Assembly: GCA_040285825.1 (NCBI GenBank)
Contig: JAUPSS010000009.1
Location: forward strand, 248,001-312,000
From: Eukaryota sp. TZLM1-RC
Lineage: Eukaryota; Protista; Metamonada: BaSk clade
DNA: 64,000 nt
Direction: 5' to 3'
This document shows positions 7,436 to 46,205 of this stretch, one piece after another (position 1 is the stretch's first letter; each line of letters starts with the position of its first letter). A model generated the notes under the pieces. The model did no database searches. It had not been told where the DNA came from and saw only the letters and a list, made by a program, of their open reading frames with translations. The position numbers and the translations under genes were made by a program.

Positions 7436-7499
7436 TGATCTTTCATTGATGGCTTGTTAATTAAGAAATATGATATTTATTCCATTGGGATTTATTTCA

Positions 7500-14685: not shown

Positions 14686-15626
14686 TTATAAGAGATACTC
14701 TGGTGTACGAAGAGAAACATGGGGTTCACCTCTCCTGGGTGCAGGGTCGTATTGAATAAACTTGTAATCACCATTATCATCAAGTTCCATAATCGCTGCT
14801 TGATTACCACAGCGGTAACAGTCTAAAGTTAGAAATATCCAAATGGCGACATACAGTTTGGGGCAGAAAACACAGTAACAACCTTATTGTCATGGCTCCA
14901 ATTGTAACCAGCCATTACAAGCTGATGAGCTCTCACAAGAAGCTTTAGACTATTGTTATGGCAAAATGTTTCAGAGATATCATGTCCAAAGGTATACCCT
15001 GCACCACGAGGAGAAACTCCCCAGCCAAGGCGATCATCGGGATCTGACCAAAGGATGTCACACATTGCACCCTCATGTGGTGGATCGACTGTTCTTTCCA
15101 GAGAGCGTATTTGTTCGATAGTTTCCAGAGAAGGACTGAGACCTCCATGAAGACAAAAGATACTATTATTGATAAGTGCAGCTAGAGGTAAATGGTCAAA
15201 GAGATCAGTAAACTGCTTCCACATGTTCGGAGAACCATATTTGCGACAGCACTCGTCGTAAAAACCATAGACCTGTGTGATTTGACGTGACTCGTGATTA
15301 CCCCTCAACAAAAATACACGTTGTGGATATCGAACTTTCAGTGCAATGAGGAGAGCAGCCACTTCAATAGAGTAATAGCCTCTATCAACATAGTCGCCTA
15401 AGAAAAGGAAGTTCGTGTCAGGGCAATCTCCAGTGATCTTGAACATTTCTATCAGGTCCCAATACTGACCATGAATATCGCCAACAACAGTGATGGGAGT
15501 AGATATACAAATTACGTTGGGTTGATGTGCCAACATCTCGGTGGCCTTTTTACATAGAAGCTCCATTTGAGATTCAGGGGGAAGCTCGCATTTACGCAAT
15601 TGCTCTATTATGAGGTCAATATCCAT
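14686..15626 (-). CDS. PPP2C: Serine/threonine protein phosphatase 2A catalytic subunit (2 exons)
   Basis: GDIHGQ, GDYVDRG, RGNHES, RAHQL. The 32-nt intron 14823-14854 (GTATGT..CTAACTTTAG) restores [31 protein letters not shown]. Confidence 0.93.
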
Positions 15627-17190
15627 TAGTTACAGATGATGTCTATAACAATGAAATCAGTGTCCTGTTTACACCAATACAGAGGACTGAGTTTTTGAGA
15701 AGCGGAAGATTTTCCCATTGATGCCTTTTTCTTTGAACCTATGTCAACCTTGACTCTCTGCAGGTATTCCGGTCTATCTCCACCTTTTACATGTGCTTCC
15801 ATCACTGCCAACATATTCAGCGAAGCGTTTCGATCTCTATTCCACAAACTTTCGCATGATTTACACATGGTAAGTCCGTGACGAATAGACATCTCATGCC
15901 TCTTCCATGGCCTAGGATTTCTGCACCATTGGAATGTTTCAACTGTTTTCTCCGTCTTCTAACAGTTGAAACAACAGCAACTGGTTCAAAACTCATCAAT
16001 CAAAAATACCTTATAACCAGCCTTTTTAAATAGAATTCTCAAACCTTTTACTTTGGTAGGTTCTTTGAATTTCATGTGTTTTCGTTGTTCCCAGTCTCCG
16101 ATTCCGATAACTACTTGACATGGATCACCAATTACTGATTTGAATCTCTGTATCATTTTCACCTCGGACCTTGTGCGATTGATCTCAGCCCACCGTCTTA
16201 GTTTCCTAAATATTTTTTGATGATAGACTTCACCAACAATACTATTCACAAAATTCTTTTGTTTAATATACTCCATAAATGTATCAAACCTGCAGCTTTT
16301 GGAATTGAATTGGGATAAAGTTGCTTCCCATTCTGCTACAGATTTAGTCGTGTGATCATTGTTTCTCAAATTTAATGAGTAATCAATTTCGTGGGGAATA
16401 TTGATTTCTTGAGGTACTTCACCTCTTAATAAACTAGTTGTTCTTTCAGTCATTTGATTAATTATACTGCTGCTTAAAGCCATCCTTTGTTGTTGCTCTT
16501 CAGATGGTTCATAATTGGATAGATCAATCACTCTACCAGTAGAGTTACTTATTGTGATAAGAGTGTCATTACGTATGCTGTCTCTTATTCTTTTGAATTT
16601 GAAACTTTTCGACTCAAATCTTCGTTGATTTTGAGTGTACCTGAAATGAACATATTTATCTCTCTCAAGTTTCTTTGAATGAGTCATTCCAGTAGCTAAA
16701 TTTGCAGAAAAATAGAGTAGATCAGATTTCTTTGGATCAGAAGCAGCAAGGGTCATTTCTTGGAATTCAGAAGGATTGATGCTGGGCTTATCAATATATT
16801 TTCTTTATCTTTCAATTCTTTTGCAGTTACGTTGAGTTTTTTCAAGTCCATTCTAGATTGAATGAATGATACCGCTATTCCATCAGTCTCGATACTAGAC
16901 ATGACGTACTTGGAATTTTCTGAATAAAGTTTAGTGTTTTTAATCTTATCCATTTTCAAAAAGGTATTCCATAAAACCAAATCAGCAGCTTGATTATTTC
17001 GTTGGTAGGACGACCTTTGACCAAGAATGTTCTTGAATTCGACAAAGAACAGGTCCAATAAACTTTTCTTGTCAATTCTGATATACAAGGGAATACAAGA
17101 ATTCTTCAAAGGGAGAGCATGAAAGAATTTACATTCCTCATTTTCTAAATGATTATTAATATAAAACATTGCTCTGAGGATCAAGGTCAA
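15627..17190 (-). pseudogene. Fanzor1-type RNA-guided nuclease, family A; 5'-truncated and frameshifted
   Basis: Split over ORFs 16753..17190, 15986..16756 and 15626..15892: IETDG, SDPKKSDLLY (RuvC-I), IGDW..KEPTK..FLIDEF (RuvC-II), CKSC, WNRDRNASLN (RuvC-III), RPEYLQR. Confidence 0.9.
15630..15720 (-). ncRNA. Putative family-A Fanzor omegaRNA scaffold / element right end
   Basis: ~85-nt terminal segment conserved in 4 copies; GTCCT..AGGAC stem and terminal hairpin GTTATAGA-catca-TCTGTAAC; homology ends just after ATCTG(T). The 5' boundary is a guess. Confidence 0.6.
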
Positions 17191-17325
17191 TTTTACTTTC
17201 CCCTGATATAATTTCAGAAATTGTTTTTAGTTTGCGTGGTTGATACTAATTTGTGTAAATACTACAAGTATAAACAACAAATCGACCAGAAATTGAGGGG
17301 TTCAAGTGTTTGTGATTCAATTCTA

Positions 17326-17994
17326 TTAAATTTGAATTATAGTATTGAACCCATTCACTAGCATCGATTTCACCCTTAAAAAGTCCTCATTTTCAGAACG
17401 TTTCATAATATTTGGGATGTAAAATTTGAGAATATGGAAACCACATTTTATATGAGGATTATAAGTTTCTAATAATTTTTTAAATGAATTTAGCAATTCT
17501 TTTTCAGAGGAATGATGATTTAAAGTGATATTTTGATCATCAACTTTGCAACAATGTTCATTTCTGATTGTTGACTTCTCTACAAGATCACAAAAACAAA
17601 GATTTAATTCAATCTGTTCTCGAGTGAAAATATGAGAAACAGAATTTGGAACAAACTTTGTTGTAGATTGACAGTACAAGATGGAATGTTCTCTTGCATA
17701 AATGACAATTATTTCATCCTCATCACTGAGCTTTTTACTCAACACCAAACTTTCAATATCAAAATGTAAAATTCTGAGAGTAAGTTGCGTTTTGACATTT
17801 GATGGTGTCACTAAAGGGTACTTATATCGAGTCAACGGATTCTCATTGAAAAGTGTTTTTTTACACGTTTCTAAGGAGTGCATCAGCTCGTTTTTTTCTG
17901 ATGGTTTTATATAAAGAGGAACATTTTTTTGTCTCAAAAAATTGTCGTTCATTGTCAACACAGCTATAAAAACATCTTTTGTTTTGATTGACAA
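17326..17994 (-). pseudogene. Family-B DNA polymerase 3'-5' exonuclease domain relic
   Basis: LRILHFDIE (ExoI), SSEKELL..F..YNPHIKCGFHILKFYIPNI (degenerate ExoII); no polymerase domain follows. Confidence 0.65.
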
Positions 17995-17999
17995 AAGGT

Positions 18000-18341
18000 T
18001 TAATTTGAGCTAAATCAATTGAATTGAACTTATTTGACAAATATTTATTGATCATTTTTTTGCACACAATATGGTGACTTTTCCACAATCATACATATTA
18101 GATTGAAACTATTCAGATAAATTCTGACTAATATTGATTCCAAGTTCTCCAAATTGATTGAATTACTTTTTTGCTGTTGTTCTTGATTATGACAAAGACT
18201 ATCAAAAAGAAAAGCTTTTACTGTTCTGGATTTGATCCAGAATGCAACAAGTACCCAATGTTGACCAATGGTAAATTGTTCCTCAACAGACACAATCAAA
18301 TATGATTGATGAAATGCATCATTATAGGGTAGAAGAATCAT
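18000..18341 (-). pseudogene. CE-clan (Ulp1/adenain-like) cysteine protease relic
   Basis: GQHWVLVAFW..AFLFDSL motif; frameshifted downstream. Confidence 0.5.
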
Positions 18342-18469
18342 TTGTATACTGATGTAAAAGTGGCAAGAAATATTTCATTTGTGTAATTTTTGGAAAATCA
18401 ACATTATTTTTACTCTACATTTTTATTGAACTAAAATTCTGTCTAATATTCATTATCTTCAAACAAGCA

Positions 18470-19560
18470 TCACCATTACAAAACCTATTCAGAGCATTTC
18501 GTTCATATTCTACACCAATACCTAAAAGAGTTTTAGAAATCATTGTTGGAATTTACTTGAAAATGCAAAAAACAATTCTATTTAACCATAAAGTGGAATT
18601 CATCTGTTTACGAGATCTATTTTGTAAAGTTGTCTTTAAATTTTCAAAAAAGTGAAATCATGAAGGTCCAATTTTGCTCAAAAGAGAAATTGCAAACGGC
18701 ACAAACTGGTATTTCGCATGTTCGACTCTACCAAATTGTGCCAATGGTTTTTCATCTTTTTATATTTTCATTTTTTTCGGGGTTAGATAGTGGCGAATCA
18801 GCAGAATACACCAAACGAGCAGCAGAATTTTGCACACTTCTACTGAGACAACATCCACAACGTTGAGAACACCATCGATTCCTGGAGCTACTAAATCTGC
18901 CCTTCTTTTACCAAAGGACTTCTCAGTTTGATCTGGAGATTGCTTACGTCCTAAAGGTTCAAAAAAAGCCTCTATATTGAAACGTTTACACATGGCATAT
19001 AATTGATCACCAACTGAATCATGAACAATTGAGTGATAAGTTATAAAATATTTGCAGTTTAAAATAAGGGAAAGTGTAACCACATTCTCACAGCGACAAA
19101 TTAAATCATTTGGTAACGAACAAGGCCATAAGAAGCATCTCATTCTCATAGCAGTGGTCCATTAATGATCATTGAGTAGAAAGTCATAAATGTTTGGAAC
19201 TTGAAAAGATTATGCAAAAACGGGTTGTTTTTTTTGGTCAAGCTAAGACGTACAACATAATCCAAGTTTTCTAAAAATTTTAAAATTTTTACCTGCAATT
19301 TTGCAAAAGTCAGTGGTAAGCTTCTTGAAGGAAGTTCCACAGTATCAGAGGGAAAAAATTTAGACCAAATATTCTGTGAATGAGAATCAATTTCATGTTG
19401 CAAAAAAAAGATAAGAGCTGCCACAGTTTTGAATGAGAAAAATTTTTTCTGCAAAGCGATTCGCAAATTCAAAGATAAAATTTTTACCACCTCCAATAAA
19501 TGCAGCTTTACAGAGGTAAACCTGAAATTGAATGTCTTTCCTTTATTTCTATTTCAATTT
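18470..19560 (-). mobile_element. RLE non-LTR retrotransposon, degraded copy of the 41765-43245 family
   Basis: MRMRCFLWPCSLPNDLICRC..KRRADLVAPGIDGVLNVVDVVSV is nearly identical to ORFs 41989..42870 and 59673..60278. Confidence 0.9.
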
Positions 19561-20049
19561 TTGACATGTGTCTCCCATGAAATTAGATCCCTCAATTCTA
19601 TCTATCTAATTATAGGAGCAACATTGTTTCGAGTTCAATTGTTGATTTGTATAGAATATCGTGTGAGAAATAATTCTATGGGAAGCAATTGTGGGTGTAA
19701 GAAAATATTGTAAGACCCAAAAATTCTGAAAATAAGTTATTGGTGGAGGAAGAAAACAATAACGGCCATTCCTCAAAGTGGTTTCAATTTGGTGGACAAA
19801 AGTGTGAAAGAAGAGATTTGCATAAAATATTTTATCAGATAGCTCATCAATCTTTCCAAAATAAACACAAAAACAATTGCTCCGTTCTATAAAGAGGCTG
19901 TGGGTGGAAACACTGATGTGTGAAACACATAAAGCTTCCATGTTCTTGCCCCAGACAGAACCAGCAAATTCATAGATAATGTGTTTTCTTGAATGATTGT
20001 AAAATGTTTATTAATCAATAATGTTGAACAATAAATCAAAGAACAATTT

Positions 20050-20343
20050 TTAAACTTCATGATGGACTACTTGGACACATTGACCCTTCTCAACTAAAAA
20101 AGAGGAAGAGTCAACCTGACCAAGTAGTCTATTTTCAACCAAATGGTAAGGAGAGTCTTCATGAGAAAAAGTTCCCTTTTTACCTTTGGTTGAACAAAAT
20201 TTCTCCTGTGAAGGTGGAATTTCAGGAGGACTGGAAATGAGCTCCCAGTAGGGCTCAGTGCAAGCTTCCTCCTGGAAGGTTTCACTCAGCAACAAATCCA
20301 CATAAATCTGAATCATCTTTGGACCAGGGAGTGCGTCTGACAT
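20050..20343 (-). CDS. Small hypothetical protein
   Basis: 97-aa ATG-initiated ORF, more GC-rich than its flanks; no motif recognised. Confidence 0.45.
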   Translation of the reverse strand: MSDALPGPKMIQIYVDLLLSETFQEEACTEPYWELISSPPEIPPSQEKFCSTKGKKGTFSHEDSPYHLVENRLLGQVDSSSFLVEKGQCVQVVHHEV

Positions 20344-21554: not shown

Positions 21555-24500
21555 ATGGTTCAATCCAACTACATATGTATGCATTGTTACCTATTCACTA
21601 CACTTCTCCTCGCCCTATACATTTCTCTTGGTTTTTGTGAGATAAAATACTGGACATGTACGTCTGGTCATATAGATACTTCTTCTTGCTGGGTTCTAGC
21701 TGATTCATCACCAACTGAGGCTCCTACTGCAGAAGACTCTCTCATCTTTCCAAATCGTGTTTTATCTTCTGCTTCAATATCGGTACATTCATCACATGGT
21801 TTTTCAGTTCTCTGGCTTGGATCAGGTAACACTCTTCAACTCTTATCTTCTACTATCACAACTGATCGATTTATTTTTGCAGGTGGTGATGTCTTTGGGT
21901 CACCTGATTCAGAAGACCAGATTGTATCAATTCTTGAAGAAGGAATCGTCTCTCAACCAACGACCTTAAGCAGATCTACATTGAACGTTAGAGGCACCCT
22001 TACTATTGCTGCATGTTCATTAACACTTTCAAATGCTCATATAGTAGTACAAGATGGTGGTCAGCTCAAAATGATCTCCACGCAGTTATCGGGATGGGGG
22101 AGGAATGACCAAAGTCAATTATTACCCTTTAACGTGTTCAATCCTTCTGAATCTCAGCTAGAAGAACACCAACTTACCCGAATTCCGCTTCTTTTTGGTG
22201 ATAATATTGTGGACATTGGAGTTTCTGGTATGGGAAGTTTCTTTCTTTCTTGTTTAGGTTTCTTGTATGAGGCTTCTGGATCAACTCTTCTTCCCCAATT
22301 GATTCTTAAAGATATAAACCAAATAATTGTAAATGATCATATTCTTGCTAGGGTAGCAGACAGTAATACAATTTGGTCAAGGGGTAGGAATGATTACAAT
22401 CAAATCATTGATGACCCTTCCGATTTCATTGATTGGGTGCTCATTACAATACCAGAAGTAGAAGAGATAGTAGACATTGCTGTAGGTAAAGATTGTTCCT
22501 TAATACTGGGAAATAATGGTTTGTAACCCTAACCCTAACCCTAGGTTTGGTTTATTCTTGGGGTAGACGTAGAGATGATCAGGGCTTTGTCACTGCCACG
22601 TGCCAGCCGTTTGATTCTCCTATACTTGGAACTCCTACCTTGATTGAGCTACCTTTTGCTGTAAGTTCTATTTCAGCTGGTTATCATTTCTCTTTATTTA
22701 TCTCAACCAATGACGAGCTATATGGCTGTGGTAATAATGAGCAAAGCCAAATATCCCCACTTTCTGCAAAGTTTTTTGAAGTGCCCGAAATTATTTCTCA
22801 TCCAAATGATATTATTATTCAAGCCAGTGCCACGTCCAACATGGCGTTCTTTCTTAATGATCACGGGTATCTATCTCGCACAGGTAGGCCTCCTGATGTT
22901 TATTTTATGGAAAGAGTTTCTTCCTTCAGCACAGGAGTGGATCATGTTTTGCTTAACCATGATGGCGATGTTGTTTCTGGTATGTGGAATAATGATTTTA
23001 AACAAATTGATCCCTCCAGCAGTTCAGATCTTATCACAAACCCAATCGTTATTGGTGATGGGGTTATTGGTATAGCAAGTGGAGACAATAGCTTTTTTTT
23101 AAAAAAACAATCGCCCAAGCTTTTAATAGAATCTAATTCAGAAGGAACCTTGGTAGTTGAACATGAAGGAAGTTTTACTATTGATTCTGAATTTGAAGTT
23201 ATTCTCGACCTTCCTGTCACTATTCACGGAGAGTTTGTAGTTAATAAGGGGGAAACGTGGATGTTAAATTTGTTTATAGCAAGTGGACTAATTAAGGCTA
23301 CGGATAGATTAATAGTTACTTTACCCAGTGTTTTTTATCCATCAACAGAAATTAAATCTACCAACGTATTAGAATTTACCTTTGAAACTGAATTCTGTCA
23401 CCATTTAGAAGGTAGTATTTCTTTATCTGGAGATACAGCGGAATTAGTGTTGAGTAGAGGTTGCTTCAATTTTGAAACCTTGTATTTGCTCACTACTCCC
23501 TTGATTAAAGCTCAGTTTGGCAGTCAAATTGATTTCAGAGGTTTTAATGGTGTTAACAGTTTACTTTACCATTTAGTTATTGATGAACAATCTTTTGTTA
23601 TACTTGACGGTTTTAACTATATTGAAAATCTAACCCTAATTGATGGGTCACTTGAACTATATAGGGAATTAACTATCGGTGAATTAGATTTCTTTTCAGG
23701 AACAATTAAAGCCGCTAAACTGGTTGACCTAACTGTAACCCTTGTTCAATTTTTTCAAGGGGACTCTCATATTGAAAATTTAGATCTTTATGCTGAAAAT
23801 TTGAATATTTTAAATGGAGATGTTTGGCTTTCTGGTCAATTTTCACTTGTTGTTAACACTCTTAGTATCACTTGTGGTGAAACTTGCCAAATTTTTGCGG
23901 ATGACGTCACCGACCAAGAGCAGCTCACTATTAATGACAAGTTAAACATTTCGATGAGCAATTCACTTGCTATTGCTTCTTTTAATATCCATGTAACCTT
24001 TAATTCAAGTTATTTTTTAGTTTCTGAAGTTTCTAATGTTGTTTTTACTGATGAATCCTATTTAGTTTACACTTCATCTGAACTCTTGTCTGAAACTTTT
24101 TTAATATTTGGACGCCTTTCCTTTAGTGGAACCTTGATTTCTACTCTTTCTTCATTGGCAATTCAAGGTCAACAAACTGGTAGAGTTCACCTTTCTAATT
24201 CTGCCCAAATTTACATACTCTTATTTAGACTATCGCAAGTTGCTAGCATTATTTGCGAAGGTTGTCATTTTCAACATTCTTCCATTGGATTTATTCTCAA
24301 TGGACGTTCTTGCCTTGAGATAACACAATTTAATGGTGGGGTCATTGAATCCATTTCTGCAATATTGGGTTCAAGAGTTTATCTACCATCTGTATCAGTA
24401 GGTAGATTGAGTCTATCGAATTCCGAGTTGAAATTAACTGGTGATGTGATGATTAGCCAAACTGCTGGTTTTTCGGGTGTATTGATTGAAGGAGGGAATC

Positions 24501-32346: not shown

Positions 32347-34212
32347 ATGGATAACGTTCTACAAACTACAACTGTGGGAGCGTCTGTCAACCAGTTCTTC
32401 GACTCAGAGGCACAAGAAGCAATGGAACGCCAGTTCCAAGTTCTTGCTAGTATTGGAGCTCATGCTACTCACCTAGCACGACTCTTTGTGCTCCAATACC
32501 CAGAACTTTCTATGTGGCTTACTCAAAGCCAGTTCTGGAGCCTCTGTTTCGACTTTGTTTGCCAAAGTGAGCCTAAACAAAGGAGGCCATTTGAAAACCA
32601 TCCTTTGGTTTACAAAGCGCTGCAACACCTTGTTCAGCACTGTTGGCCCTGGCGACCGCTGAATGAAACCACCTCAGCCGACGGTGGTAGATTTTGGTGT
32701 CTTTCCACTCTTCTTGGCAGTCGAGCCATCCAACTGCGAGAAGCCTTTTGTCAGTTGCTTGCTGACGGCCCTGTCGTCTGGAAACGCAATTTTTTCAAAA
32801 GCTGTGCTCAGTTTCTAAATTGCCCCTGGCCCAAGAAATACGCCGACTGTGTACTTCAAGGGATTCAGCCAGATGAGTCAATTTTACAATGGTATCAAGA
32901 AATACACCAGCATATCTTGGTCCATTGGCTCAATATGACAGCCAACGCCTATATTGGTGGCGGTGAAAATTTGTTCGAAAATTCAATAAGAAACGAACGG
33001 TTTCCCATCAATATGGAGTCTGCTGCAACAATCGTTCAATCTGGCTTGAACATTTTATCTTTTTTAGAAGATAACTGCCCTGATGTGATGAAAAGGCACT
33101 CTCTCTCTCCACTGTCCAGTTGGTCTCCATGCTTCTGCAGCTTGACTAAAGAAGCAGAAGCTTATTTCACAAAACTAAATGCAAACAAAGAGCTTCTGAA
33201 CAACCCTTATCGGTTTTTTAATAAATCGAAATTTATTAACTATACCATTTTTTCGAATGGTGATTCCATGCGGTTTACGTTTACCCAGAAGGAAAGAAAA
33301 ACTTATAATAGGCCAAATAAAGCGGAATTTGAGCCCAGGCGAGCCTCTGGAAATTATGATTTTCATAACTCTGAAAGGAAACGAAAATCCAATGTCCATA
33401 GAACAGCAAATCCACAGAGAAGACCGCGGTTACCAGTGGAACAACAGCCCAATTACAGAGATCCTGATGAAAATTTGTTTTTTGTAGCCATTGATCCCAA
33501 CCACAGCAATCTTTGTGGTTGGACTGCTGGTTCTTTCCGAAATTCTGCTACTGTTTTTGAACGTTCTGGACTGCTACTGAATCCAAAAGAACGAAGACTA
33601 AATCACCCCCCTCCTCTCACTCAAGCAACTCCTAACACTTATTCCGCTCAGAGCTTCCAAGAGTATCTGATTGAAATAAGTTTACCTTATGTTCCTGAAT
33701 CTGAGGAAGAGCCTGAATATGCTTCAATTATGTCTGGAAATTTGCAGCGTGGTGCAAGAAAAAAGCTGAGAAGAAATAAGTTTGATTTCTTCATACGAAG
33801 ACAAAAGAGACTAACTAGTTTTATTAACAAAATTAAACGCTTGTCTGAAGGAAGAAACACTATAGTTTGGTTCGGCAATGGCGGTGGTGGTCCTCGTCAA
33901 TCTGTGAAATCCCCCCGAAAGAGATTTCTCAAACAAATCAAAAAACACTTTGAAAGCGTCAAAGTCGGGGACGAGTTTATGACCTCAGCAAAAGTGAATT
34001 GCTGTAAGGTCTTTCATAGAAAGATCTATCATGATGACGGAAGGGTAAATAACGCTAAGTTCGATTGCCCTCGATGTCAGACCAACTGGTCTAGAGACAT
34101 CTCAGCCTCCAGAAACCAGCTGGAGATTGCAATTAGTGAGTATTTCACTGGTACTAGGCCAGAACCATTCAGAAGGCCAAGGCGTGTGAGACGTCTAAGA
34201 AGACAGCAGTAG
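32347..34212 (+). CDS. Intact Fanzor RNA-guided endonuclease, family B (621 aa from ATG 32347)
   Basis: Uninterrupted ORF; FSNGDS (TDG-equivalent), FVAIDPN (RuvC-I), VWFGNG, VGDEFMTS (RuvC-II), CC..CPRC zinc finger, WSRDISASRN (RuvC-III), RPEPFRR tail. Confidence 0.9.
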   Translation: MDNVLQTTTVGASVNQFFDSEAQEAMERQFQVLASIGAHATHLARLFVLQYPELSMWLTQSQFWSLCFDFVCQSEPKQRRPFENHPLVYKALQHLVQHCWPWRPLNETTSADGGRFWCLSTLLGSRAIQLREAFCQLLADGPVVWKRNFFKSCAQFLNCPWPKKYADCVLQGIQPDESILQWYQEIHQHILVHWLNMTANAYIGGGENLFENSIRNERFPINMESAATIVQSGLNILSFLEDNCPDVMKRHSLSPLSSWSPCFCSLTKEAEAYFTKLNANKELLNNPYRFFNKSKFINYTIFSNGDSMRFTFTQKERKTYNRPNKAEFEPRRASGNYDFHNSERKRKSNVHRTANPQRRPRLPVEQQPNYRDPDENLFFVAIDPNHSNLCGWTAGSFRNSATVFERSGLLLNPKERRLNHPPPLTQATPNTYSAQSFQEYLIEISLPYVPESEEEPEYASIMSGNLQRGARKKLRRNKFDFFIRRQKRLTSFINKIKRLSEGRNTIVWFGNGGGGPRQSVKSPRKRFLKQIKKHFESVKVGDEFMTSAKVNCCKVFHRKIYHDDGRVNNAKFDCPRCQTNWSRDISASRNQLEIAISEYFTGTRPEPFRRPRRVRRLRRQQ

Positions 34213-34324
34213 CTGTTTTAATCAACGTATTTCCAAGGTGTTTAGTGTATACTAACCCTTGGTGCTGAGAAGTTTACACAATTATTAGGGATATTTATTC
34301 AATATTCACTTTGTGTGAAATTCT
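34200..34324 (+). ncRNA. Putative family-B Fanzor omegaRNA scaffold
   Basis: Three hairpins (AGACAGC/GCTGTTT; CCAAGG..TTAGT/ACTAA..CCTTGG; AGAAGTTTACACA..GATATT/AATATT..TGTGTGAAATTCT) conserved with 45590-45710; homology ends at GTGAAATTCT. Confidence 0.75.
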
Positions 34325-34327
34325 CAG

Positions 34328-35428
34328 ATGTTGACTTCTCATATTCACTTGGAATGTCAGCTAATGTCGCATTACGATGTCGACTGCACTTATCATCCTT
34401 CTTCGCTTATCTCTTACTACTATACGCAAACAATAAAGCTTAAATCAATGCTCAAGTCATCGTTATATTTCTGCAGACAATTGCTTCAGTCAAACAACAT
34501 TCATCTTCCCAATGTCCCTTCTTTTAACCCAGATGAACACTGGGGTGATCTTGAAACTGACTGTGTTGAAGTTTTGCATCATCGTTTGGCCAATGCCGAA
34601 AGAAGTAAATCTAACCTGACAAAGCAGCTTAATCAGCTATCAATTGAGAAGGAACGATTTTCTTCAGAAATTGATGTACTAAGAAAGTCATTCTCGGAGC
34701 TCAATAGTCATTTGAATTCACAAAACAAATTGATGAAACAACAGAAAGAAGCATCAATACTTTTGGAAACCAAAAACTCAGATTTGGTGGTTGCCAAGAA
34801 AAACTTGATTCAAAGCAACATTAAACTCAAATCTGAAGTTAAAACATTAAATGACCTAAATTCCACAACAAATAACTTTTTGAATTCTTTAAAATTAAAG
34901 AATAATAAACTTATTAAAGAAACAAGTTATCTTCGTGCCCAACTTAACAGAATGGCTAGCTCTAACAGAAGACCAAGACCATGCATTCATTATGACACCT
35001 ATGTTCAAACAAATGGATCTTTTAGCAGTACTTTGGAAGTTAAGCTTTTGGCACTTCAGGAAACTATATCAAGAAAGGAAACTGTAATCAATCATTTAAA
35101 CAATCAGTTGAAGTCGATAAAAGAAAATACTAAATTGAAACCACCAAACATAGTCCAAAGAACCATAGCCTCGCAAACAGATCCATTCAACAATCCTAGA
35201 TTGGAAGAGGAACTGAGAAGGCAGCTTGTCAAAGTAAACTCATTATCAGAAACCCTCAAAGAAATACTTTCAAAAAGTAATAAATCATCACCTTCTAATC
35301 TCTATTTGGAAAGAACCCTTTCTAATGCAATGCATCTTACAATGGAAGGTAAAGCTGCAGGTGCTGCCAATGGAATGATCAAAATTTTGGAAGGAATGCG
35401 GGAGATGGTTTACCGTGATGCAAGCTGA
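34328..35428 (+). CDS. Hypothetical coiled-coil protein
   Basis: 366-aa ATG-initiated ORF, heptad-rich; AATAAA downstream near 35514. Confidence 0.7.
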   Translation: MLTSHIHLECQLMSHYDVDCTYHPSSLISYYYTQTIKLKSMLKSSLYFCRQLLQSNNIHLPNVPSFNPDEHWGDLETDCVEVLHHRLANAERSKSNLTKQLNQLSIEKERFSSEIDVLRKSFSELNSHLNSQNKLMKQQKEASILLETKNSDLVVAKKNLIQSNIKLKSEVKTLNDLNSTTNNFLNSLKLKNNKLIKETSYLRAQLNRMASSNRRPRPCIHYDTYVQTNGSFSSTLEVKLLALQETISRKETVINHLNNQLKSIKENTKLKPPNIVQRTIASQTDPFNNPRLEEELRRQLVKVNSLSETLKEILSKSNKSSPSNLYLERTLSNAMHLTMEGKAAGAANGMIKILEGMREMVYRDAS

Positions 35429-35659: not shown

Positions 35660-36001
35660 CTAGAGCTTGATCTTGAGCTTTCTACGTCTTGGCCTTCCTT
35701 CACTCGACTCCTGTTGAATTGCTGGTTGGGATGTCTCAATAGTTGGAGATTTAGAGTCAGTTGGTGAAGGAGTAGGCTGTTGGGAAACAGTGGTTGATTC
35801 TGATGGTGTGGAAAAAACTGATGGTTGATCATGAACAACAACGTCTGTGCTGGGGATTTGTGAAAAGGAGGATGTTTGAGGAGATTCAGGCTTTTGTGGT
35901 GATGGGGGTCTGGTTGTAGGACTCCATAGAGGCAGTTGTAGGTGGAGATACCAACATTGTCGTTTCTCCCATCGGCGTTTTCTATTAGATTCTTCCATCA
36001 T
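35660..36001 (-). CDS. Small Ser/Pro-rich hypothetical protein with basic tail
   Basis: 113-aa ORF with tandem ATGATG start and C-terminal RPRRRKLKIKL. Confidence 0.5.
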   Translation of the reverse strand: MMEESNRKRRWEKRQCWYLHLQLPLWSPTTRPPSPQKPESPQTSSFSQIPSTDVVVHDQPSVFSTPSESTTVSQQPTPSPTDSKSPTIETSQPAIQQESSEGRPRRRKLKIKL

Positions 36002-36312
36002 TACAGATATTGTCTATAACAATGAAATAAGTGTCCTTTTTACACCGATGTAGAGGGTCTAAGTTTTTGAGAAGTGGAAGATTTTCTTCTTGATACCTTT
36101 TTCTTTGAACTTTCATCAACCTTGGCTCTTTGCAGGTTTACCGGTCAATCTCCGCCTTTTACATGTGCTTCCATCACTGCCAACATATCCAGCGAAGCTT
36201 TTTGATCTCTATTCCACAAACTTTCACTTGATTTACACATGGTAAGCACGTGACGAATAGACATCTCATGCCTCTTCCATGGCCTTGGAGTTCTACATCA
36301 TCGGAATGTTTC
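36002..36312 (-). mobile_element. Family-A Fanzor 3'-end-only fragment (RuvC-III remnant plus right end)
   Basis: Colinear, highly similar to 15630-15940. Confidence 0.9.
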
Positions 36313-36545
36313 GAATATATAAGTTATGGTTTGCACTCTCTTTTTAAAAGTTTTTTCTGAAAATAAATTCAACAATTCTTTTGTAATAAGAGTCATATTA
36401 TAAGATTATAACTTCACTATAAAGAAAAAGTTGCGAATGGTTGAACATTTTTTTGAATTACATCAACTAAAGTCAAAACGCTTCTCTATAAAATACCTTC
36501 AAGATGAAAAAAAAACAAAAATTCATTTACAAAACAAACAACACA

Positions 36546-37268: not shown

Positions 37269-37429
37269 TCCTTTAAATAGTGGTCTTTCAGGGTGAAGAA
37301 AAATCCCCCTCACCAGCCACCCTGACACTAATCCCCCTCATAATCCCCCTGCCTTAGTTTTTGCTTTCTACTAGTCTAATCACCACTCTTTCTTATCTTA
37401 TGCCACTGTCCTTCCAGCTATTGTCCAAA

Positions 37430-37562
37430 AAAACTGTTTTCTTTGAACCTTCATCAACCTTGACTCTTTGAAGGTATTCCGGTTTATCGAAACTGCTACT
37501 CAATCAGTCTTGATGCTAGTCATGATGTACTTGGTATCTACTGAATAAAGTTTGGTGTTCTT
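37430..37562 (-). mobile_element. Internally deleted family-A Fanzor relic
   Basis: 37440-37488 matches ~15731-15778 (KPEYLQRVKVDEGSKK); 37492-37560 matches ~16870-16940. Confidence 0.7.
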
Positions 37563-38259: not shown

Positions 38260-38760
38260 ACACGTGCTTTGTACACGTGTTCGAACACCGCACACTTAAT
38301 CACAGTTCTTTTACTTTACACAATTCCAATGAACTATTTTAAGGAAAGAGACAAATAATAAACTACCCTGATTTGAGGTTTTTACATAAACAACAATAAC
38401 TGAAATGTGCAGAACACCGCATAAGTGTTGAACTGTTATAACTTATAAACATGTTGCACTTTTTGAAAATTTCAAAAAAGTGTCACTGAATAGGTCTGGT
38501 AAAACAATGAACTCCACTTTTTGGTTAAATAGAATTGTTTTTTGCATTTTCAAGTCTATTCCAACAATGATTTCAAAGGCACTTTTAGCTATTGGTGTAG
38601 AATATGAACGTAATGCTGTGAGTAGGTTTAGCAATAGTGACGCTTGTTTGGAGGATATTGAATTCTAGATGGGTTTTTTATCTCAATAAATATTCCAGTT
38701 AAAAACAATCAACACGTGTTCTGCACACGTGTTCGAACACCGGTGTTCCAGCACGTGCCG
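38260..38760. repeat. Direct repeats with CACGTG / GTGTTCGAACAC palindromes flanking a retro fragment
   Basis: CACGTGCTTTGTACACGTGTTCGAACACCG (38261-38290) and CACGTGTTCTGCACACGTGTTCGAACACCG (38713-38742). Confidence 0.7.
38460..38700 (+). mobile_element. 5'-truncated RLE retrotransposon 3' end
   Basis: NRSGKTMNSTFWLNRIVF..CLEDIEF* followed by TCTCAATAAATATTCCAG; near-identical to the reverse complement of 41765-42010. Confidence 0.9.
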
Positions 38761-41612: not shown

Positions 41613-41764
41613 ATTAAAGAAGGGGAATTGGTCAATTTCAAATTTCTATTGAAACAAAATTGGAACGCTAAAAAAATAACACGCATCTCTTAGGTATTGT
41701 TTGCCTAAAGCCCAGAAACGAATTTTTTTGATCTTTTCTTTTATCTTTTGATTTTTTTTAAAAA

Positions 41765-43245
41765 CTGGAATATTTATTGAGATAAAAATAACCATCTAGA
41801 ATTCAATATCCTCCAAACAAGCGTCACTATTACTGAACCTACTCACAGCATTACGTTCATATTCTACACCGATAGCTAAAAGTGCCTTTGAAATCATTGT
41901 ATGAATAGACTTGAAAATGCAAAAAACAATTCTATTTAACCAGAAAGTGGAGTTCATTGTTTTACCAGACCTATTCAGTAACACTTTTTTAAAAATTTTC
42001 CAAAAAGTGCAACCCTGAAGGTCCAATATTGCCAAAAAGAGAAATTGCAAACGGCACAAACTGATATTTCACATGTTCCACTCTACCTAACTGTGCCAAA
42101 GGTTCTTCATATTTTTTTATCTTCTTTTTTTCGGCGTTAGATAACAGCGAATCAGCGGAATACACTAAACGAGCAGCAGAATTTTTGCAAACATCAACTG
42201 AGACAACATCTACAACATTGAGAACACCATCGATCCCCGGAGCTACTAAATCTGCCCTTCTTTTACCAAAGGAATCATCAGTTTGATCTGAAGACAGCTT
42301 ACGTACTAGTGGCTCAAAAAATGCCTCTATATTGAAACTTTTGTACATGGCATATAATTGATCACGAACTGAGTCATGAACAATTGAGCGATAAGTTATA
42401 AAATACTTACAGTTTAAAATATGGGAAAGCGTAACAACACTCTTGCAGCGACAAATTAAATCATTTGGTAATGAACAAGGCCATAGAAAACATCTCATTC
42501 TCATTGCAGTGGTCCATTGGTGATCATTAAGTAGAAGGCCATAAATGTGGGGAATTTGGGAGATTAGGCAACTTGAACAACTGTCTTCAAGATCAATCAA
42601 AAAGTTTGCAAAAATGGGATTTTTTTCCTTAGCCAAGCTAAGACGTACAATATAATCCAAGTTTTCTAAAACTTTCAAGATTTTTTTCTGCAATTTTGCA
42701 AAAGTCAGTGGTAATGAGAGCAAGCTTCTTGAAGGAAGTTCCACAATATCAGAGGGGAAACATTTAGCCCAAATATTGGGTGAAAGAGTTTCAATTTCCT
42801 GTTGCAAAGAAATAAGATAAGAGCTGCCACAATTTTCAATGAGATGAATTTTTTCAGGAAAACGATTCACAAATTCATAAATAAAATTCTTTCCACCTAT
42901 CTTTTGATTTTGGAAATGAATTTTTGGTTCAATGTGTGCTCAATTATTGAACAGCAAAGAGCACCATCTACAACTAAACAATTGGTGCATCGAAAACCAA
43001 AAAAATAATAGTTGGGAGATCCAGAGAACAGAAGATTCTGATCTACCGAGTAAATCAATGTCATGTGCAAAAGCAATTTTTGTTTTACGAAGAGCAGATG
43101 CAAGTGTTATTCCGTGTGTGGTAATAACTTTCACCTCAGTGAAAGGAGTCAGGGGTATATTGACAACAACAAGAAATATATTGTTGAATTTGCGTCCACC
43201 AACCTAAACTTGTTCAGAGAAACTTTCAAACTTATGATCTCCTGA
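41765..43245 (-). mobile_element. 5'-truncated RLE (CRE-like) non-LTR retrotransposon
   Basis: ORF 41989..42870 with CRC..HILNC..RSIVHD knuckle and RRADL..VDVV..KKKIKKY RLE; 3' AATAAA. Confidence 0.9.
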
Positions 43246-43251
43246 GAAAAA

Positions 43252-44771
43252 CCTGAGAGAGATAAATATGTTCATTTTAGGTACACTCAAAATCAACGAA
43301 GATTTGAGTCGAAAAGTTTCAAATTCAAAAGAATAAGAGACAGCATACGTGATGACACTCTTATCACAATAAGTAAGTCTACTGGTAGAGTGATTGATCT
43401 ATCCAATTATGAACCATCTGAAGAGCAACAACAAAGGATGGCTTTAAGCAGCAGTATAATTAATCAAATGACTGAAAGAACAATTAGTTTATTAAGAGGT
43501 GAAGTACCTCAAGAAATCAATATTCCCCACGAAATTGACTACTCATTAAATTTGAGAAATAATGAACAAAAAACTAAATCTGTAGCAGAATGGGAAGCGA
43601 CTTTATCCCAATTCAATTCCAAAAGCTGCAGGTTTGATAGATTTATGGAGTATATTAAACAAAAGAATTTTGTGAATAGTATTGTTCGTCAAGTCTATCA
43701 TCAAAACAAATTTAGGAAATTAAGACGGTGGGCTGAGATCAATCGCACAAGGTCTGAGGCAAAGATGATTCAGAGATTCAAATCAGTAATTGGTGATCCA
43801 TGTCAAGTAGTTATCGGAATCGGAGACTGGGAACAACCAAAACAAATGAAATTCAAAGAACCTACCAAAGAAAAAAGTTTGAGAATTCTATTGAAAAAGG
43901 CTGGCTATAAGGTCTTTTTAATTGATGAGTTTCGAACCAGTTGGTGTTGTTTCAACTGCAAGAAAGCGGAGAAAACAGTTGAAACATTCCGATGGTGCAG
44001 AAATCTTAGGCCAAGGAAGAGGCATGAGATGTCTATTCGTCACGGGCTTACCATGTAAAAAGTATTTATTGAATTTGCACACTTAATTAAATTAGATCAT
44101 AACTAATGGGACGACTATCATTGAACCAAGATTTCCTCTACAAAATCTTGATTTGCTTGCTGTCTAACTAAAGCTTCTCTAATTCGATTGAAAAACCGCG
44201 GTAATCTATTAATAATGGCAAATTGAATCCGTGAACGCCGTAAAAAATTTCAAATCTTTTCATTGTTTTTTCTTGCACCATTTTTTGGAAGTCATCCAAA
44301 AAAGTTTCTGCTTCGACTGATAATCTACCATTTATCGAAAATGGGAAAGCAATAAAAGCCAGCTGTGTATTTCTATCGACATTTGCTTCTTCAATATCTT
44401 TATCATATTTTCTATGTTTCTCTTTTGCTTTAAAATCCAGAGCAGCCACCGGATTAAGTTTTCTTCTGTGAACCAAAGTATCATTTGCAACATTACATGA
44501 GACAAAGTCAACAATAGCTTCAGAATTATCAATCCAACCATGTGCTTACCATGTGTAAATCATGTGAAAGTTTGTGGAATAGAGATCGAAATGCTTCGCT
44601 GGATATGTTGGCAGTGATAGAAGCACATGTAAAAGGCGGAGATTGACCAGTAAGGTTGATGAAATTTCAAAGAAAAAGGCATCAAGGACAAAATCTTCCA
44701 CTTCTCAAAAACTGAGTCCTCTACATCGGTGTAAAAAGGACACTTATTTCATTGTTATAGACATCATCTGT
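43252..44771 (+). pseudogene. Family-A Fanzor, 5'-truncated, interrupted by a retrotransposon
   Basis: ORF 43390..44058 near-identical to 15986..16756 (IGDW, IDEFRTS, CFNC); resumes at 44544 with CKSC..WNRDRNAS and the right end. Confidence 0.92.
44057..44543 (-). mobile_element. 5'-truncated RLE retrotransposon inserted in Fanzor with 11-bp TSD
   Basis: TSD GCTTACCATGT at 44046-44056 and 44544-44554; RLE C-terminus (KAKEKHRKY..FPFSINGRLS). Confidence 0.9.
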
Positions 44772-44775
44772 TTCA

Positions 44776-45192
44776 ATGATCTCCGCACAAGAACTTCTTT
44801 CATGGATTCTGTCTCTTGACAGAGTTACTACTTCTACTTTCCTTTTTTCTATGGGTGCAATTTTTCTATTGCTGTTTTTGTTCTATGTCACTGCACTTTG
44901 CTTGAAGGACTACTACGAAGAAACAAGACTTCCTGATGTTACCCAAAAAGCTCCTATAAGAAGGGACTCTGTTCTAGTGATGGATAGCCCTGAAATTGCC
45001 TCATCACCCAGCATATCACCTGTAAACAAACCGCTTCGCACCCAATCTTCTGGAAATCTTCATCGTTCGAAATCTCCTCCACCATTGTCACCCAGGAATG
45101 TGGTTACCAGGACACGAGCCTATAGCTCTCCATCACCTAGACCATCCAGTCCATTTTACAAACATTCAAGGTTGGTGAATAACGCTTTGTAG
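44776..45192 (+). CDS. Small single-pass membrane protein with Ser/Pro-rich tail
   Basis: 138 aa, one TM segment; AATAAA near 45231. Confidence 0.65.
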   Translation: MISAQELLSWILSLDRVTTSTFLFSMGAIFLLLFLFYVTALCLKDYYEETRLPDVTQKAPIRRDSVLVMDSPEIASSPSISPVNKPLRTQSSGNLHRSKSPPPLSPRNVVTRTRAYSSPSPRPSSPFYKHSRLVNNAL

Positions 45193-45250
45193 CTTCAATT
45201 TTGGGTTTCTTGTATAGAATGTAAATTATTAATAAATGTTTATTGTTTTA

Positions 45251-45502
45251 TTAACTAAAACCTTCTTTATTGAAATCATATGTTTGGTCAGAGGGCTGAG
45301 GAACAATTTGAACATGGCCTTGTAATCCCAAACCAGTTATCAACTGGTCTAACAGCTGCTCAGCTCCCATAAGAGGAGCAGCAGAAGACTGTGGTGTAGG
45401 GAGGACAGACGGTATTCTACGTGCACTGGTATTGGTGTCTGATGAAGAACAATAAGAAGGTGATGCTACTTCTTTTGCATTAAACTCAAGTGCTGGATCC
45501 AT
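45251..45502 (-). CDS. Small hypothetical protein (83 aa from ATG 45502)
   Basis: MDPALEF..; AATAAA right after the stop; convergent with the 44776 gene. Confidence 0.5.
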   Translation of the reverse strand: MDPALEFNAKEVASPSYCSSSDTNTSARRIPSVLPTPQSSAAPLMGAEQLLDQLITGLGLQGHVQIVPQPSDQTYDFNKEGFS

Positions 45503-45505
45503 ACT

Positions 45506-45589
45506 TACAGATATTGTCTTTAGCAACGAAAAAGTGTCTTTTTTAAACCAATGTACAGAGACTGAGTGTTTTCAAAGATTTTCTTCTTA
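45506..45589 (-). mobile_element. Diverged family-A Fanzor right end (omegaRNA-only remnant)
   Basis: AAGAAGAAAATCTT..CTCAGTCTCTGTACATTGGTTTAAAAAGACACTTTTTCGTTGCTAAAGACAATATCTGTAA aligns with 36001-36091. Confidence 0.75.
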
Positions 45590-46205
45590 AGAATTTCACA
45601 TCAAGCGGATATTGAATAAATATCGCCACTGATGTAAACTTCTCAACACCAAGGGTTAGTATACACTAAATACCTTGGAAATACGTTGATGAAAACAGCT
45701 ACTGCTGTCTCCTCAGACATCTTACATGCCTTGGTCTTCGGAATGGTTCTGTCCTAGTACCAGTGAAATACTCACTGATTACAGTCTCCAGCTGATTTCT
45801 GGAGGCTGAGATGTCCCTAGACCAGTTAGTCTGACATCGAGGGCAATCCAACTTAGCGTTATTTACCCTTCCGTCATCATGATATATCTTTCTATGGAAG
45901 ACCTTACAACAATTCACTTTTGCTGAGGTCGTAAACTCGTCCCCCACTTTAACGTTTTCAAAGTGTTTTTGGATTTGTTTGAGAAATCTCTTTCTGGGGG
46001 ATTTCACAGCTTGACGAGATGGACCGCTGTCGCCATTGCCGAACCAAACTATAGTGTTTCTTCCTTTTGACAAGCGTTTAATTTTGTTAATAAAACGAGT
46101 TAGTCTCTTTTGTCTTCGTATGAAAAAATCAAACTTATTTCTTCTAAGTTTTTTTCTTGCATCACGCTGCAGGTTTCCACACGTAATTGAAGAATATTCA
46201 AGGCA
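45590..46205 (-). pseudogene. Family-B Fanzor 3' fragment with omegaRNA region
   Basis: ORF 45699..46217 is highly similar to the C-terminal ~165 aa of 32347..34212; the noncoding tail is conserved to GTGAAATTCT. Confidence 0.93.

Follow-up and report, generated by a model that had tools for sequence, protein, structure and literature searches.

A 64,000-nt stretch of the genome of Skoliomonas litria TZLM1-RC (Metamonada; assembly GCA_040285825.1), hereafter the window, carries elements of two Fanzor-type families, A and B, several of whose right ends lie within a few nucleotides of the ATG of a co-oriented ORF. The question raised by this locus is whether such a placement reflects chance, the fate of the copies after their insertion, or the choice of the insertion site itself. 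The elements and the adjacent ORFs are located in the window as follows:

14829..15632, minus strand: PP2A-like phosphatase host ORF (14829-15626, ATG at 15626), preceded by the 6-nt spacer TAACTA (15632-15627)
15633..18341, minus strand: A1, near full-length pseudogene of family A (Fanzor1), right end ...ATCTG at 15633
32347..34327, plus strand: B1, family-B Fanzor/TnpB-like element whose 621-aa ORF (32347-34212) is intact and whose 3′ flank is strongly structured
34328..35428, plus strand: 366-aa orphan ORF beginning directly after the B1 end
35660..36003, minus strand: co-oriented 112/113-aa ORF downstream of A2, junction TAATG-ATG
36004..36312, minus strand: A2, family-A remnant consisting of only the last ~309 nt, right end at 36004
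37437..37562, minus strand: two short internal family-A fragments without a right end
43249..44770, plus strand: A3, 5′-truncated family-A copy split by a nested insert, right end at 44770
44771..45192, plus strand: spacer TTTCA followed by a 138-aa ORF (ATG at 44776), downstream of A3
45251..45507, minus strand: spacer TAAGT followed by an 83-aa ORF (ATG at 45502), downstream of A4
45508..45589, minus strand: A4, family-A remnant of ~80 nt, right end at 45508, left edge touching the right end of B2
45587..46217, minus strand: B2, family-B remnant containing the C-terminal ~170 codons and the 3′ flank, right end abutting A4

The four family-A ends of the window terminate with ...ATCTG on the element strand (positions 15633(-), 36004(-), 44770(+) and 45508(-)), and sequence inspection confirmed the junctions TAACTA-ATG, TAATG-ATG, TTTCA-ATG and TAAGT-ATG given in the original prediction. 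At A2, the ATG at 35998 (5-nt spacing) is the start in the public gene call, with an alternative ATG at 36001.

The census was extended to 211 kb on 7 contigs, comprising the window and seven more loci (L002, L003 and L006-L010) of the same genome, situated on contigs other than that of the window. The additional loci were picked for carrying family A, and are unbiased for position relative to genes and biased for element density. This sample contains 15 family-A right ends (...ATAGACAWYATCTG), 4 in the window and 11 in the other loci, each with an intact last base. A co-oriented ATG follows all 15 of them, at +5 (11 ends), +6 (3) or +7 (1), so that the near-fixed spacing first noticed in the window holds beyond it. 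In the seven non-window loci, the ATG lies at +5 to +7 in 11/11 cases and opens an ORF of 199-643 aa in 10 of these; the remaining one, the sole exception among the 15 ends, opens merely a 16-aa ORF. Altogether, ORFs of at least 83 aa (range 83-643 aa) are opened at 14/15 ends. The background chance per site of a nearby co-oriented ATG-ORF, calculated on raw ORFs and independent of annotation, is 0.004, which gives P ~4e-33 for the 211 kb; the association is much stronger than could be seen at the outset. For the control repeat families C and D of the same loci, an ATG-ORF was found beside 0/21 ends. The four A-flanked ORFs of the window compare with about 36 ORFs of at least 120 aa within it.

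It could be argued that the pattern is due to chance, or is an artefact of spurious short ORFs and gene calling. Three of the four window ORFs located after A ends are short (83-138 aa) and lack a Pfam match, and the ORF following B1 is an orphan. However, the probability given above was obtained from raw ORFs without annotation, and ten downstream ORFs are 199-643 aa long, seven of them having recognised domains and native N-termini. With 14/15 ends at ORF starts, this reading was rejected, and we give it next to no credence.

The ATGs beyond the family-A ends are native host starts. The flanked genes encode an XPG-type nuclease, NPL4, UCH, SGF29, a SPRY protein, the PP2A-like phosphatase and an acyltransferase. 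The XPG-family protein has the N-terminus MGVRGL, the UN domain of NPL4 begins at residue 1 from the A-flanked ATG, and the Metallophos domain of the PP2A-like ORF is at its usual place. The acyltransferase orthologue of the sister strain GEM-RC1 is element-free and has ctttttcaATGAAT and the same N-terminus; TTTCA-ATG-AA is common to this orthologue and the A-flanked gene. Upstream of the TZLM3-RCL orthologue there is no A end, and its synteny with a downstream RNase_T gene is preserved. No empty/filled allele pair was found at nucleotide resolution, protein identity to the sister strains being only ~50%.

A profile of family A and its relatives matched SpuFz1 (8GKH; E 2.4e-45), PpFz1 (2.7e-42) and GtFz1 (1.2e-16). 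The RuvC-II Glu, the zinc finger and RuvC-III (...VFLIDEF(R)TSCCCFNC...CKSCESLWNRDRNASLNM) are present in A1, A3 and the aligned proteins. At the position of the RuvC-I Asp, the relatives have IDPG and the family-A copies AADSG or ASDPK; an Asp is nearby, and the alignment is not decisive at this point. Judged by these profile and motif matches, family A is a Fanzor1 family; together with the Cas12f/TnpB TNB domain of family B, this bears out the initial assignment of the elements to Fanzors.

The family-A element is ~3.6 kb long, with no significant terminal inverted repeats detected between its left and right ends. In full-length copies, the left end lies 0-6 nt upstream of the element's own ATG, and the stop codon 36 nt before the right end. 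A1 comprises a Ulp1-like N-terminus, a PolB-type exonuclease and the Fanzor RuvC/Zn-finger part, and is damaged by an internal ~865-nt deletion and stop codons, while A3 is interrupted by a nested insert of ~490 nt (44057-44544), which is mostly a D-family repeat. None of the copies examined contains an intact family-A ORF (stop codons, deletions or nested insertions occur throughout), and neither an intact family-A gene nor a transposase was found in the 211 kb. Most copies were described originally as having lost their 5′ part and kept the right end, and the copy boundaries confirmed this: left boundaries are scattered along the whole element and the right ends are all intact. Right-end-anchored remnants of ~25 to 430 nt are represented by A2, A4, L002 5751, L002 17582, L003 9696 and L008 14720. 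The old copies L002 17582 and L008 14720 are best preserved in their last 25-30 nt (85-90%, compared to 69-76% elsewhere). The density of singletons is lowered in the last 60 nt of family A, and likewise in the coding RuvC-III part; since the coding part behaves in the same way, the last 60 nt may owe their conservation to constraint while the lineage was active and not to selection for a promoter. In two cases (window 45587-45590 and L003 at about 9658), the left boundary of a short A remnant coincides exactly with a B-type right end; entry of a later, truncated A copy at the same -5 site would be expected to produce this arrangement.

Comparison of the junctions revealed a weak flank motif, TWWSA-ATG-RAY. 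At a 10-bit threshold, its non-coding matches comprise 66 unoccupied sites and 1 occupied site, and 6/12 matching ORF starts are occupied (one at a second in-frame ATG counted). The placement cannot be put down to this motif, since non-coding matches are more than 10 times commoner and nearly all of them are empty. The first flank base is T in 14/15 copies, which fits a T target and is not diagnostic. Of 105 pairs of flanks from different copies, 14 agree in at least 9 of 11 positions, versus 9/741 pairs of background gene starts; two unrelated genes share TTTCAATGAAC, a third site has TTACAATGAAC, and TAACTAATGG is found at two.

Since chance, a simple motif and the behaviour of other repeats all fail to explain the placement, insertion at very short 5′ leaders, one of the possibilities raised in the original prediction, is its best reading. 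We consider it fairly probable that the elements undergo oriented, site-specific insertion at the gene-start boundary and that their AT-rich right end now acts as a proximal promoter or leader; the targeting, we infer, takes place at insertion. According to this model, family A would integrate at the 5′ edge of host protein-coding genes, on the strand of the gene and with 5-7 nt left between the element and the native ATG, slotting a whole gene unit between the host promoter and the host ATG. The insertion would remove host DNA upstream of -5, and most copies would be 5′-truncated “ghost” right ends, probably truncated at insertion. With the host DNA beyond -5 lost, the last 25-60 nt of the element (...TTTCATTGTTATAGACAWYATCTG) would serve as a promoter or leader, or permit read-through. 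In the related Giardia, the core promoters close to the ATG are short, degenerate and AT-rich, and the length of 5′ UTRs ranges from a few nt to ~25 nt (PMC1885649), so that an AT-rich element end could serve as a promoter; by this analogy, the right end probably supplies part of the host promoters. If an omegaRNA is made as in other Fanzors, its guide would open with the host 5-nt leader and the start codon, which makes the right end a candidate source of an omegaRNA whose guide would cross the start codon. RNA-guided targeting of family A may likewise be proposed by analogy with TnpB and other Fanzors. A broader version of this model is possible, although we hold it only tentatively: a Fanzor1 family would home to the boundary at which transcription and translation of Pol II genes begin, stopping 5 nt short of the ATG and always in the orientation of the gene, and would recognise the start site itself, possibly via the seed of a guide RNA derived from its flank. 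Such an element would be a promoter trap, in which the host promoter drives the Fanzor and the element end drives the host gene, and a sizeable share of this protist's genes would have had their proximal promoters rewired.

The candidate 3′-end RNA gave no match in Rfam. The right end of family A showed no covariation (0 compensatory pairs, consensus energy -9 kcal/mol), nothing unusual in single-sequence folding (z-score +0.84) and no strong subterminal hairpin.

The distribution of family A could also have arisen by near-random insertion into a compact, deletion-prone genome that keeps only those ends that are indispensable as promoters by an ATG. The decayed copies, whose last 25-30 nt are kept best, would agree with such a history, and where promoters are short and AT-rich as in Giardia (PMC1885649), a new AT-rich end could turn essential. 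Random insertion followed by selection predicts a spread of positions, however, whereas all 15 ends are intact and lie at +5 to +7. Moreover, neutral DNA is plentiful in these loci, where reverse-transcriptase elements and families C and D have survived, yet A right ends are absent from it but for the case of the 16-aa ORF. The copies are also fairly young (85-95% identity), and on balance we regard this explanation as rather unlikely. The similarity of the flanks suggests another possibility, in which the flank of a donor copy guides the Fanzor RNP to gene starts whose first 10-13 nt, comprising the leader, the ATG and the codon after it, match, and repair by way of short homology copies the element from the donor, yielding 5′-truncated copies with a precise right junction. 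The flanks of the copies are indeed far more alike than random gene starts, with TTTCAATGAAC and TAACTAATGG each recurring at two sites and TTACAATGAAC at one more, and the similarity spans the would-be TAM-proximal seed. AAG microhomology is present at the left junction of A4, and homing by TnpB is established for IS200/605 and proposed for Fanzor (PMC10432273). Nevertheless, flank similarity is not significantly linked to the A-end subfamily (p = 0.12), 9-11 nt fall short of the match required by known Fanzor or TnpB guides, no intact family-A nuclease gene turned up in the 211 kb, and a target preference of a protein could equally give similar flanks; this mechanism is, in our view, unlikely.

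Still less probable is an RNA-mediated origin, in which an mRNA-shaped unit was reverse-transcribed and joined to a host mRNA at its 5′ end, or primed at a host TSS. Both element boundaries are plausible transcript ends (a short leader and ~36 nt past the stop), truncation affects the 5′ side while the 3′ end is fixed, and RT genes are abundant in the loci. On the other hand, a poly(A) or A-rich tract is absent from every right junction, the host genes remain syntenic, left junctions occur at B ends without loss of upstream DNA, and there is no sign of intron loss, the 865-nt difference between copies lacking GT..AG ends. Oriented insertion at the gene-start boundary is the reading retained below.

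Among described systems, SpuFz1 of Spizellomyces punctatus, a Fanzor1 (Saito et al. 2023, PMC10432273), shares the IDEF / CxxC / WNRDxN core with family A and has “ghost” omegaRNA loci, in which the 3′ end occurs without the protein gene, as in many family-A remnants (the omegaRNA itself being putative here). Family A differs from the SpuFz1 elements (PMC10432273) in lacking inverted repeats and in carrying two additional parts, one Ulp1-like and one a PolB-type exonuclease. No placement of Fanzor ends at host start codons was found in the text of PMC10432273 or in papers retrieved by full-text literature searches. The Fanzor carried by non-autonomous Helitron2 elements of Chlamydomonas (10.1101/2023.06.13.544871) has, like family A, conserved 3′ ends and variable or truncated 5′ parts; a start-codon association was not reported for these elements (10.1101/2023.06.13.544871). 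Helitron/Helitron2 membership was rejected for family A, which, unlike the Helitron2-borne Fanzor, ends with ...ATCTG: no CTRR 3′ terminus, strong subterminal hairpin, asymmetric terminal repeats or RepHel gene was seen.

Transcription starts of Pol III are the targets of Ty3, and Tf1 inserts at promoters of Pol II; both are LTR retrotransposons whose integrase is tethered to host factors. As in these cases, family-A insertion would be tied to where transcription begins and not to a long motif, but family A is a DNA-level Fanzor element, at a distance from a Pol II ATG that is fixed to the base pair, and always co-oriented. Fixed position and orientation across unrelated genes, the mark of a start-site element, were found at 15/15 family-A ends. 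The bacterial insertion sequences ISAba1 and IS10 drive adjacent genes from outward-facing promoters, and the family-A end, lying just upstream of a gene, may by analogy be a candidate promoter source; those cases are selected single-gene events with variable spacing, whereas family A follows a family-wide 5-7 nt rule. TnpB and TldR take their guide from the DNA flanking the right end, and the TldR guide addresses a promoter region. TnpB homing, however, puts the element back into its own vacated site instead of selecting new ones, and TldR is an intact protein acting in trans on a distant promoter, whereas family A consists of pseudogene copies physically located at the gene start.

To our knowledge, the biological role of Fanzors in eukaryotes is open, published work dealing with RNA-guided cleavage and not with a host role or site choice. 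A base-pair-precise, oriented link of a Fanzor1 to the start codons of many unrelated housekeeping genes provides a testable tie to host expression. If insertion is targeted, a eukaryotic DNA element would here select its target sites in a way that is new and, if a flank-guide seed takes part, this would be the first natural instance in which a system of the TnpB family picks new insertion sites. Should the right ends be promoters, many essential genes of a free-living metamonad would have had their core promoter exchanged for that of a mobile element, which would also inform the workings of minimal metamonad promoters.

Family B was originally described as following the same rule, with CAG as the spacer. 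The B1 end (34327) does adjoin the ATG at 34328, although this is the one direct junction, and CAG proved to lie inside the terminal hairpin of B1, which ends at 34327, so that the ATG follows with a spacing of 0. The second copy (end at about 45587-45590, minus strand) adjoins the A4 remnant without an ATG. Unlike that of family A, the 3′ flank of family B folds into a strong structure (z = -5.35), and comparison of B1 with B2 revealed one compensatory change in it.

Seven further loci of TZLM1-RC were fetched via annotated fragments of family A (the Fanzor1 mobile element) and, together with the window, 211 kb of DNA was searched with the right end of this element, i.e. its ...ATCTG terminus. 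This analysis revealed 15 right ends (nhmmer E < 0.01), each followed by a co-oriented ATG at an offset of +5 (n = 11), +6 (n = 3) or +7 (n = 1), and ORFs of 83–643 aa are opened by 14 of these ATGs. Sequence is shared between the copies as far as ...ATAGACA(TC/AT)ATCTG and diverges beyond it. Given a per-position probability of 0.004 in the same DNA, 14 of 15 would be reached by chance with P of about 4e-33, and none of 21 ends of two control repeat families (C and D) in the same loci adjoins an ORF starting with ATG. A sixteenth, decayed right end (locus L003, position 15479; E 0.12) lies upstream of a ubiquitin-conjugating enzyme gene.

The genes downstream of the right ends include those encoding a PP2A-like phosphatase, an acyltransferase, a UCH protein with zf-UBP, NPL4, SGF29-Tudor, a SPRY protein and an XPG-family nuclease. 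The UN domain of NPL4 extends from residue 1, and the XPG-family nuclease starts with MGVRGL, which is canonical for the family. Chance and spurious ORFs are ruled out by the P value, the recognised domains and the native N-termini. The elements are placed at native gene starts, in one orientation and with base-pair precision. The four junctions noticed in the window match the sequence exactly as the original prediction described them, and the observation holds across the 211 kb. Its interpretation is partly supported: insertion at start sites is borne out, and promoter function and RNA guidance are candidate roles.

The control families are themselves repeated units of the same DNA. Family C (~1.1–1.4 kb) contains an ORF of 235–293 aa with no Pfam match; in several loci a copy of it, in one orientation or the other, is found a short way upstream of family A, and one family-A copy is interrupted by it at a point 95 nt from the right end. 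Family D (~390 nt) occurs 10 times or more in the DNA covered, in many loci, and one copy lies inside A3, a window copy of family A.

Copies of repeat families C and D
Window 18402–19518, family C
Window 38453–38709, family C
Window 41770–42898, family C
Window 59213–60296, family C
L003 11409–12799, family C
L006 16114–17527, family C
Window 7348–7439, family D
Window 44064–44448, family D
Window 58597–58790, family D

Orthologues of the acyltransferase gene were obtained from two sister strains, TZLM3-RCL and GEM-RC1, for comparison. A family-A end upstream of this gene is absent in both, and in TZLM3-RCL synteny with the downstream RNase_T gene is kept. The GEM-RC1 protein has a conserved N-terminus (MNSSKKPSPKRWYFIDW versus MNNIDTSQRWYFLDW) and its ATG lies in the context ctttttcaATGAAT, in which TTTCA-ATG-AA has the same letters as those found after the element in TZLM1-RC. 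Since the element-free context is the same and the N-termini are native, both the ATG and the 5-nt spacer before it belong to the host. Judging from this comparison, the family-A element sits between the host spacer with its ATG and the former upstream DNA. An alternative, in which the element brings its own pentamer and ATG (a portable promoter-plus-ATG cassette), was rejected for the testable cases: besides the N-termini and the GEM-RC1 orthologue, it is contradicted by pentamers that differ within one subfamily and by a spacing that is not fixed but ranges over 5–7 nt. The public call for the GEM-RC1 acyltransferase (locus L005, 7969–8049) begins at an internal out-of-frame ATG (8001), and it is translation from the ATG at 7969 that gives the conserved N-terminus; this mismatch suggests a frameshift error in the GEM-RC1 assembly or gene model.

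The flanks of family A are more alike than ordinary gene starts (mean identity test, p = 0.001), with at least 9 of 11 positions matching in 14 of 105 family-A pairs, compared to 9 of 741 background pairs. Their consensus is roughly T-W-W-S-A-ATG-R-A-Y; TTTCAATGA is present in four flanks (five if TTACAATGA is included) and TAACTAATGG in two, and the motif is weak once the ATG is set aside. At a 10-bit threshold, 67 non-coding matches to the motif were found, one with a family-A end, and 12 matches at ORF starts, six with such an end (one of these at the second in-frame ATG). Since the non-coding matches are nearly all empty and half of those at ORF starts are occupied, the elements are located at functional gene starts beyond what the mere motif explains. 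The motif combined with purifying selection against coding insertions is thus insufficient, given the unoccupied non-coding matches. The target could also comprise sequence upstream of the insertion point. Because random insertion followed by selection predicts a spread of distances, some damaged ends and copies in abundant neutral DNA, we infer that the placement was made at insertion, by targeting.

A Pfam search with the 256-aa ORF of family A gave no match. Read through its breaks, the element encodes ...VFLIDEF(R)TSCCCFNC...CKSCESLWNRDRNASLNM..., i.e. RuvC-II, zinc-finger and RuvC-III motifs, and a profile built from family A and its metagenomic relatives matches the solved Fanzor1 of Spizellomyces punctatus (E 2.4e-45). 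The full-length element (~3.6 kb) appears to form a single reading frame, in which an Ulp1-like protease region and a family-B DNA-polymerase exonuclease domain accompany the Fanzor part. In the window (15633–18341, minus strand) and in locus L006 (7676–13750), the Ulp1/C48-like region gave weak Pfam matches (E ~3e-4) and the 3′-5′ exonuclease domain a match with E 3e-7. The apparent joining of Ulp1/C48-like, PolB exonuclease and Fanzor1 parts in one frame is an unusual fusion for a Fanzor.

All readable copies of family A are pseudogenes. The least damaged C-terminal piece has a Lys/Arg-rich tail, followed by a stop codon 36 nt before the right end, and in two full-length copies with readable left ends homology begins 0–6 nt upstream of the element's own first ATG. 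Terminal inverted repeats were looked for in family A and are absent. As far as can be read from its sequence, family A is a bare gene unit, extending from 0–6 nt before its own ATG to 36 nt past its stop codon. A1, another window copy, is missing an 865-nt segment. Had this been an intron, its loss would point to copying through RNA; the segment is not bounded by GT..AG and is therefore treated as a deletion.

The left boundaries of family-A copies are spread along the entire element: three copies are nearly complete and the others begin at many points, down to remnants of ~25–80 nt. The right ends are intact in all copies, in agreement with the earlier observation that most copies had lost the 5′ part and kept this end. 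Where a fragment lacks the right end, it was split off by a nested insertion of another repeat. Remnant A4 of the window (~80 nt) starts exactly at the end of the terminal hairpin of B2, a remnant of the second, Fanzor/TnpB-like family (B), and a 38-nt family-A remnant (L003, 9696) is preceded by GTGAAATTCC, which is B-end-like. In the simplest reading, B was at the gene start first, and truncated A was later inserted into the slot between the B end and the host 5-nt leader. Such stacking, in two cases of which one is weak, is only suggestive; it favours truncation at insertion and a target that is recognised on its gene side.

The right end of family A showed no covariation and no unusual folding, and an Rfam search with it gave no match; a family-A omegaRNA is thus unsupported. 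When singleton density was used to look for post-insertion constraint, the last 60 nt of family A and the coding RuvC-III part proved equally poor in singletons. SpuFz1 has its omegaRNA at the 3′ end, and the omegaRNA is retained without the protein in "ghost" loci; the biological role of Fanzors is stated to be unknown (Saito et al., PMC10432273). Truncated Fanzor copies anchored at the 3′ end have been described in Helitron2 elements of Chlamydomonas (preprint 10.1101/2023.06.13.544871).

Family B has one intact copy (B1) in the window, with the following coding region:
Window 32347–34212, plus strand: intact family-B protein of 621 aa, with a Cas12f/TnpB TNB domain (domain match)

The 3′ flank of family B (window 34213–34327, plus strand; 45587–45698, minus strand) is predicted to form three hairpins (z = -5.35), and in the last hairpin the outermost pair is C-G in B1 and U-A in B2, which constitutes one compensatory change. 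This flank makes a good candidate for an omegaRNA, with a last base that touches the next ATG. The pattern originally proposed for family B holds for the end of B1, which directly abuts an ATG; this is the only direct junction of family B, and homologues of the orphan ORF behind it were sought and none found.

In the proposed working, family A would insert at -5, so that its own ATG replaces the host ATG behind the host promoter and the host gene is left with element DNA alone upstream. The genes flanked in this way have housekeeping roles and intact ORFs, so the last tens of nucleotides of family A may serve as their proximal promoter or leader. Core promoters of Giardia, a relative, are short, degenerate and AT-rich; an Inr-like patch occupies the start site beside the ATG, a TATA-like patch lies ~30 bp upstream, and the 5′ UTRs range from a few to ~25 nt (PMC1885649). 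The family-A end has 27% G+C in its last 30 nt and would place TTATTTCATTGTTATAG about 20–35 nt before the ATG, with the AT-rich host leader retained. The start boundary could be recognised by tethering to the initiation machinery, by use of the single-stranded DNA that an open promoter complex exposes, by the seed of a guide RNA taken from the flank, or by way of an RNA intermediate.

Relatives of family A with 40–56% identity are encoded in at least 473 stretches from JGI and other metagenomes, most of them on freshwater or marine contigs of low GC content (20–35%) and giant-virus- or protist-like in look. In a crude test of 80 metagenome loci (mostly low-GC and probably giant-virus-like), orientation and distance to the next gene were not uniform; in a subset of the relatives the next co-oriented ORF lies 72–103 nt past the stop codon. 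As far as this test goes, the start-codon rule is not general across the clade of these relatives. Full-text literature searches found neither a description of Fanzor ends positioned at start codons nor one of Fanzors in metamonads. What is new here is the oriented, start-codon-anchored placement, undescribed for Fanzor1 elements or ghost right ends; the elements themselves are of a known kind.

Conserved start contexts were also observed in other genes. Members of a small repeated gene family (L006 19864, L007 20166, L008 20992 and L009 2924) share the context ...aaatttatgtaATGTG(C/T)AAA, and the pair L002 14929 and L003 8722 shares ...ttattggatgtaATGTCTGTTGAT; both groups are additional gene units, either mobile or multi-copy.

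The host, Skoliomonas litria (strain TZLM1-RC), is an anaerobic free-living metamonad, a barthelonid relative and sister to Fornicata (PMC11603281); the name attached to homologues is "Eukaryota sp. TZLM1-RC". By exact protein matching, the window lies on contig JAUPSS010000009.1 of assembly GCA_040285825.1. The window DNA (32–41% G+C) is gene-dense and nearly devoid of introns, and contains many repeats interspersed with ordinary eukaryotic genes (COG4, RCC1-like, RRM, MULE transposase), among them:
Window 4046–5893, minus strand: MULE/Mutator transposase with SWIM zinc finger, 615 aa, intact-looking (ORF/domain)
Window 22547–30370, plus strand: very long ORF with an RCC1-like N-terminus, 2607 aa from TTG or 2509 aa from the first ATG

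A 323-aa RCC1-like ORF directly precedes the latter, and the two may be one gene, split by an intron or frameshift. Tandem repeats of 54 nt and 81 nt (window 57009–57741) form a block that is open on both strands, with low-complexity coding of the Pro/Gly/Gln type.
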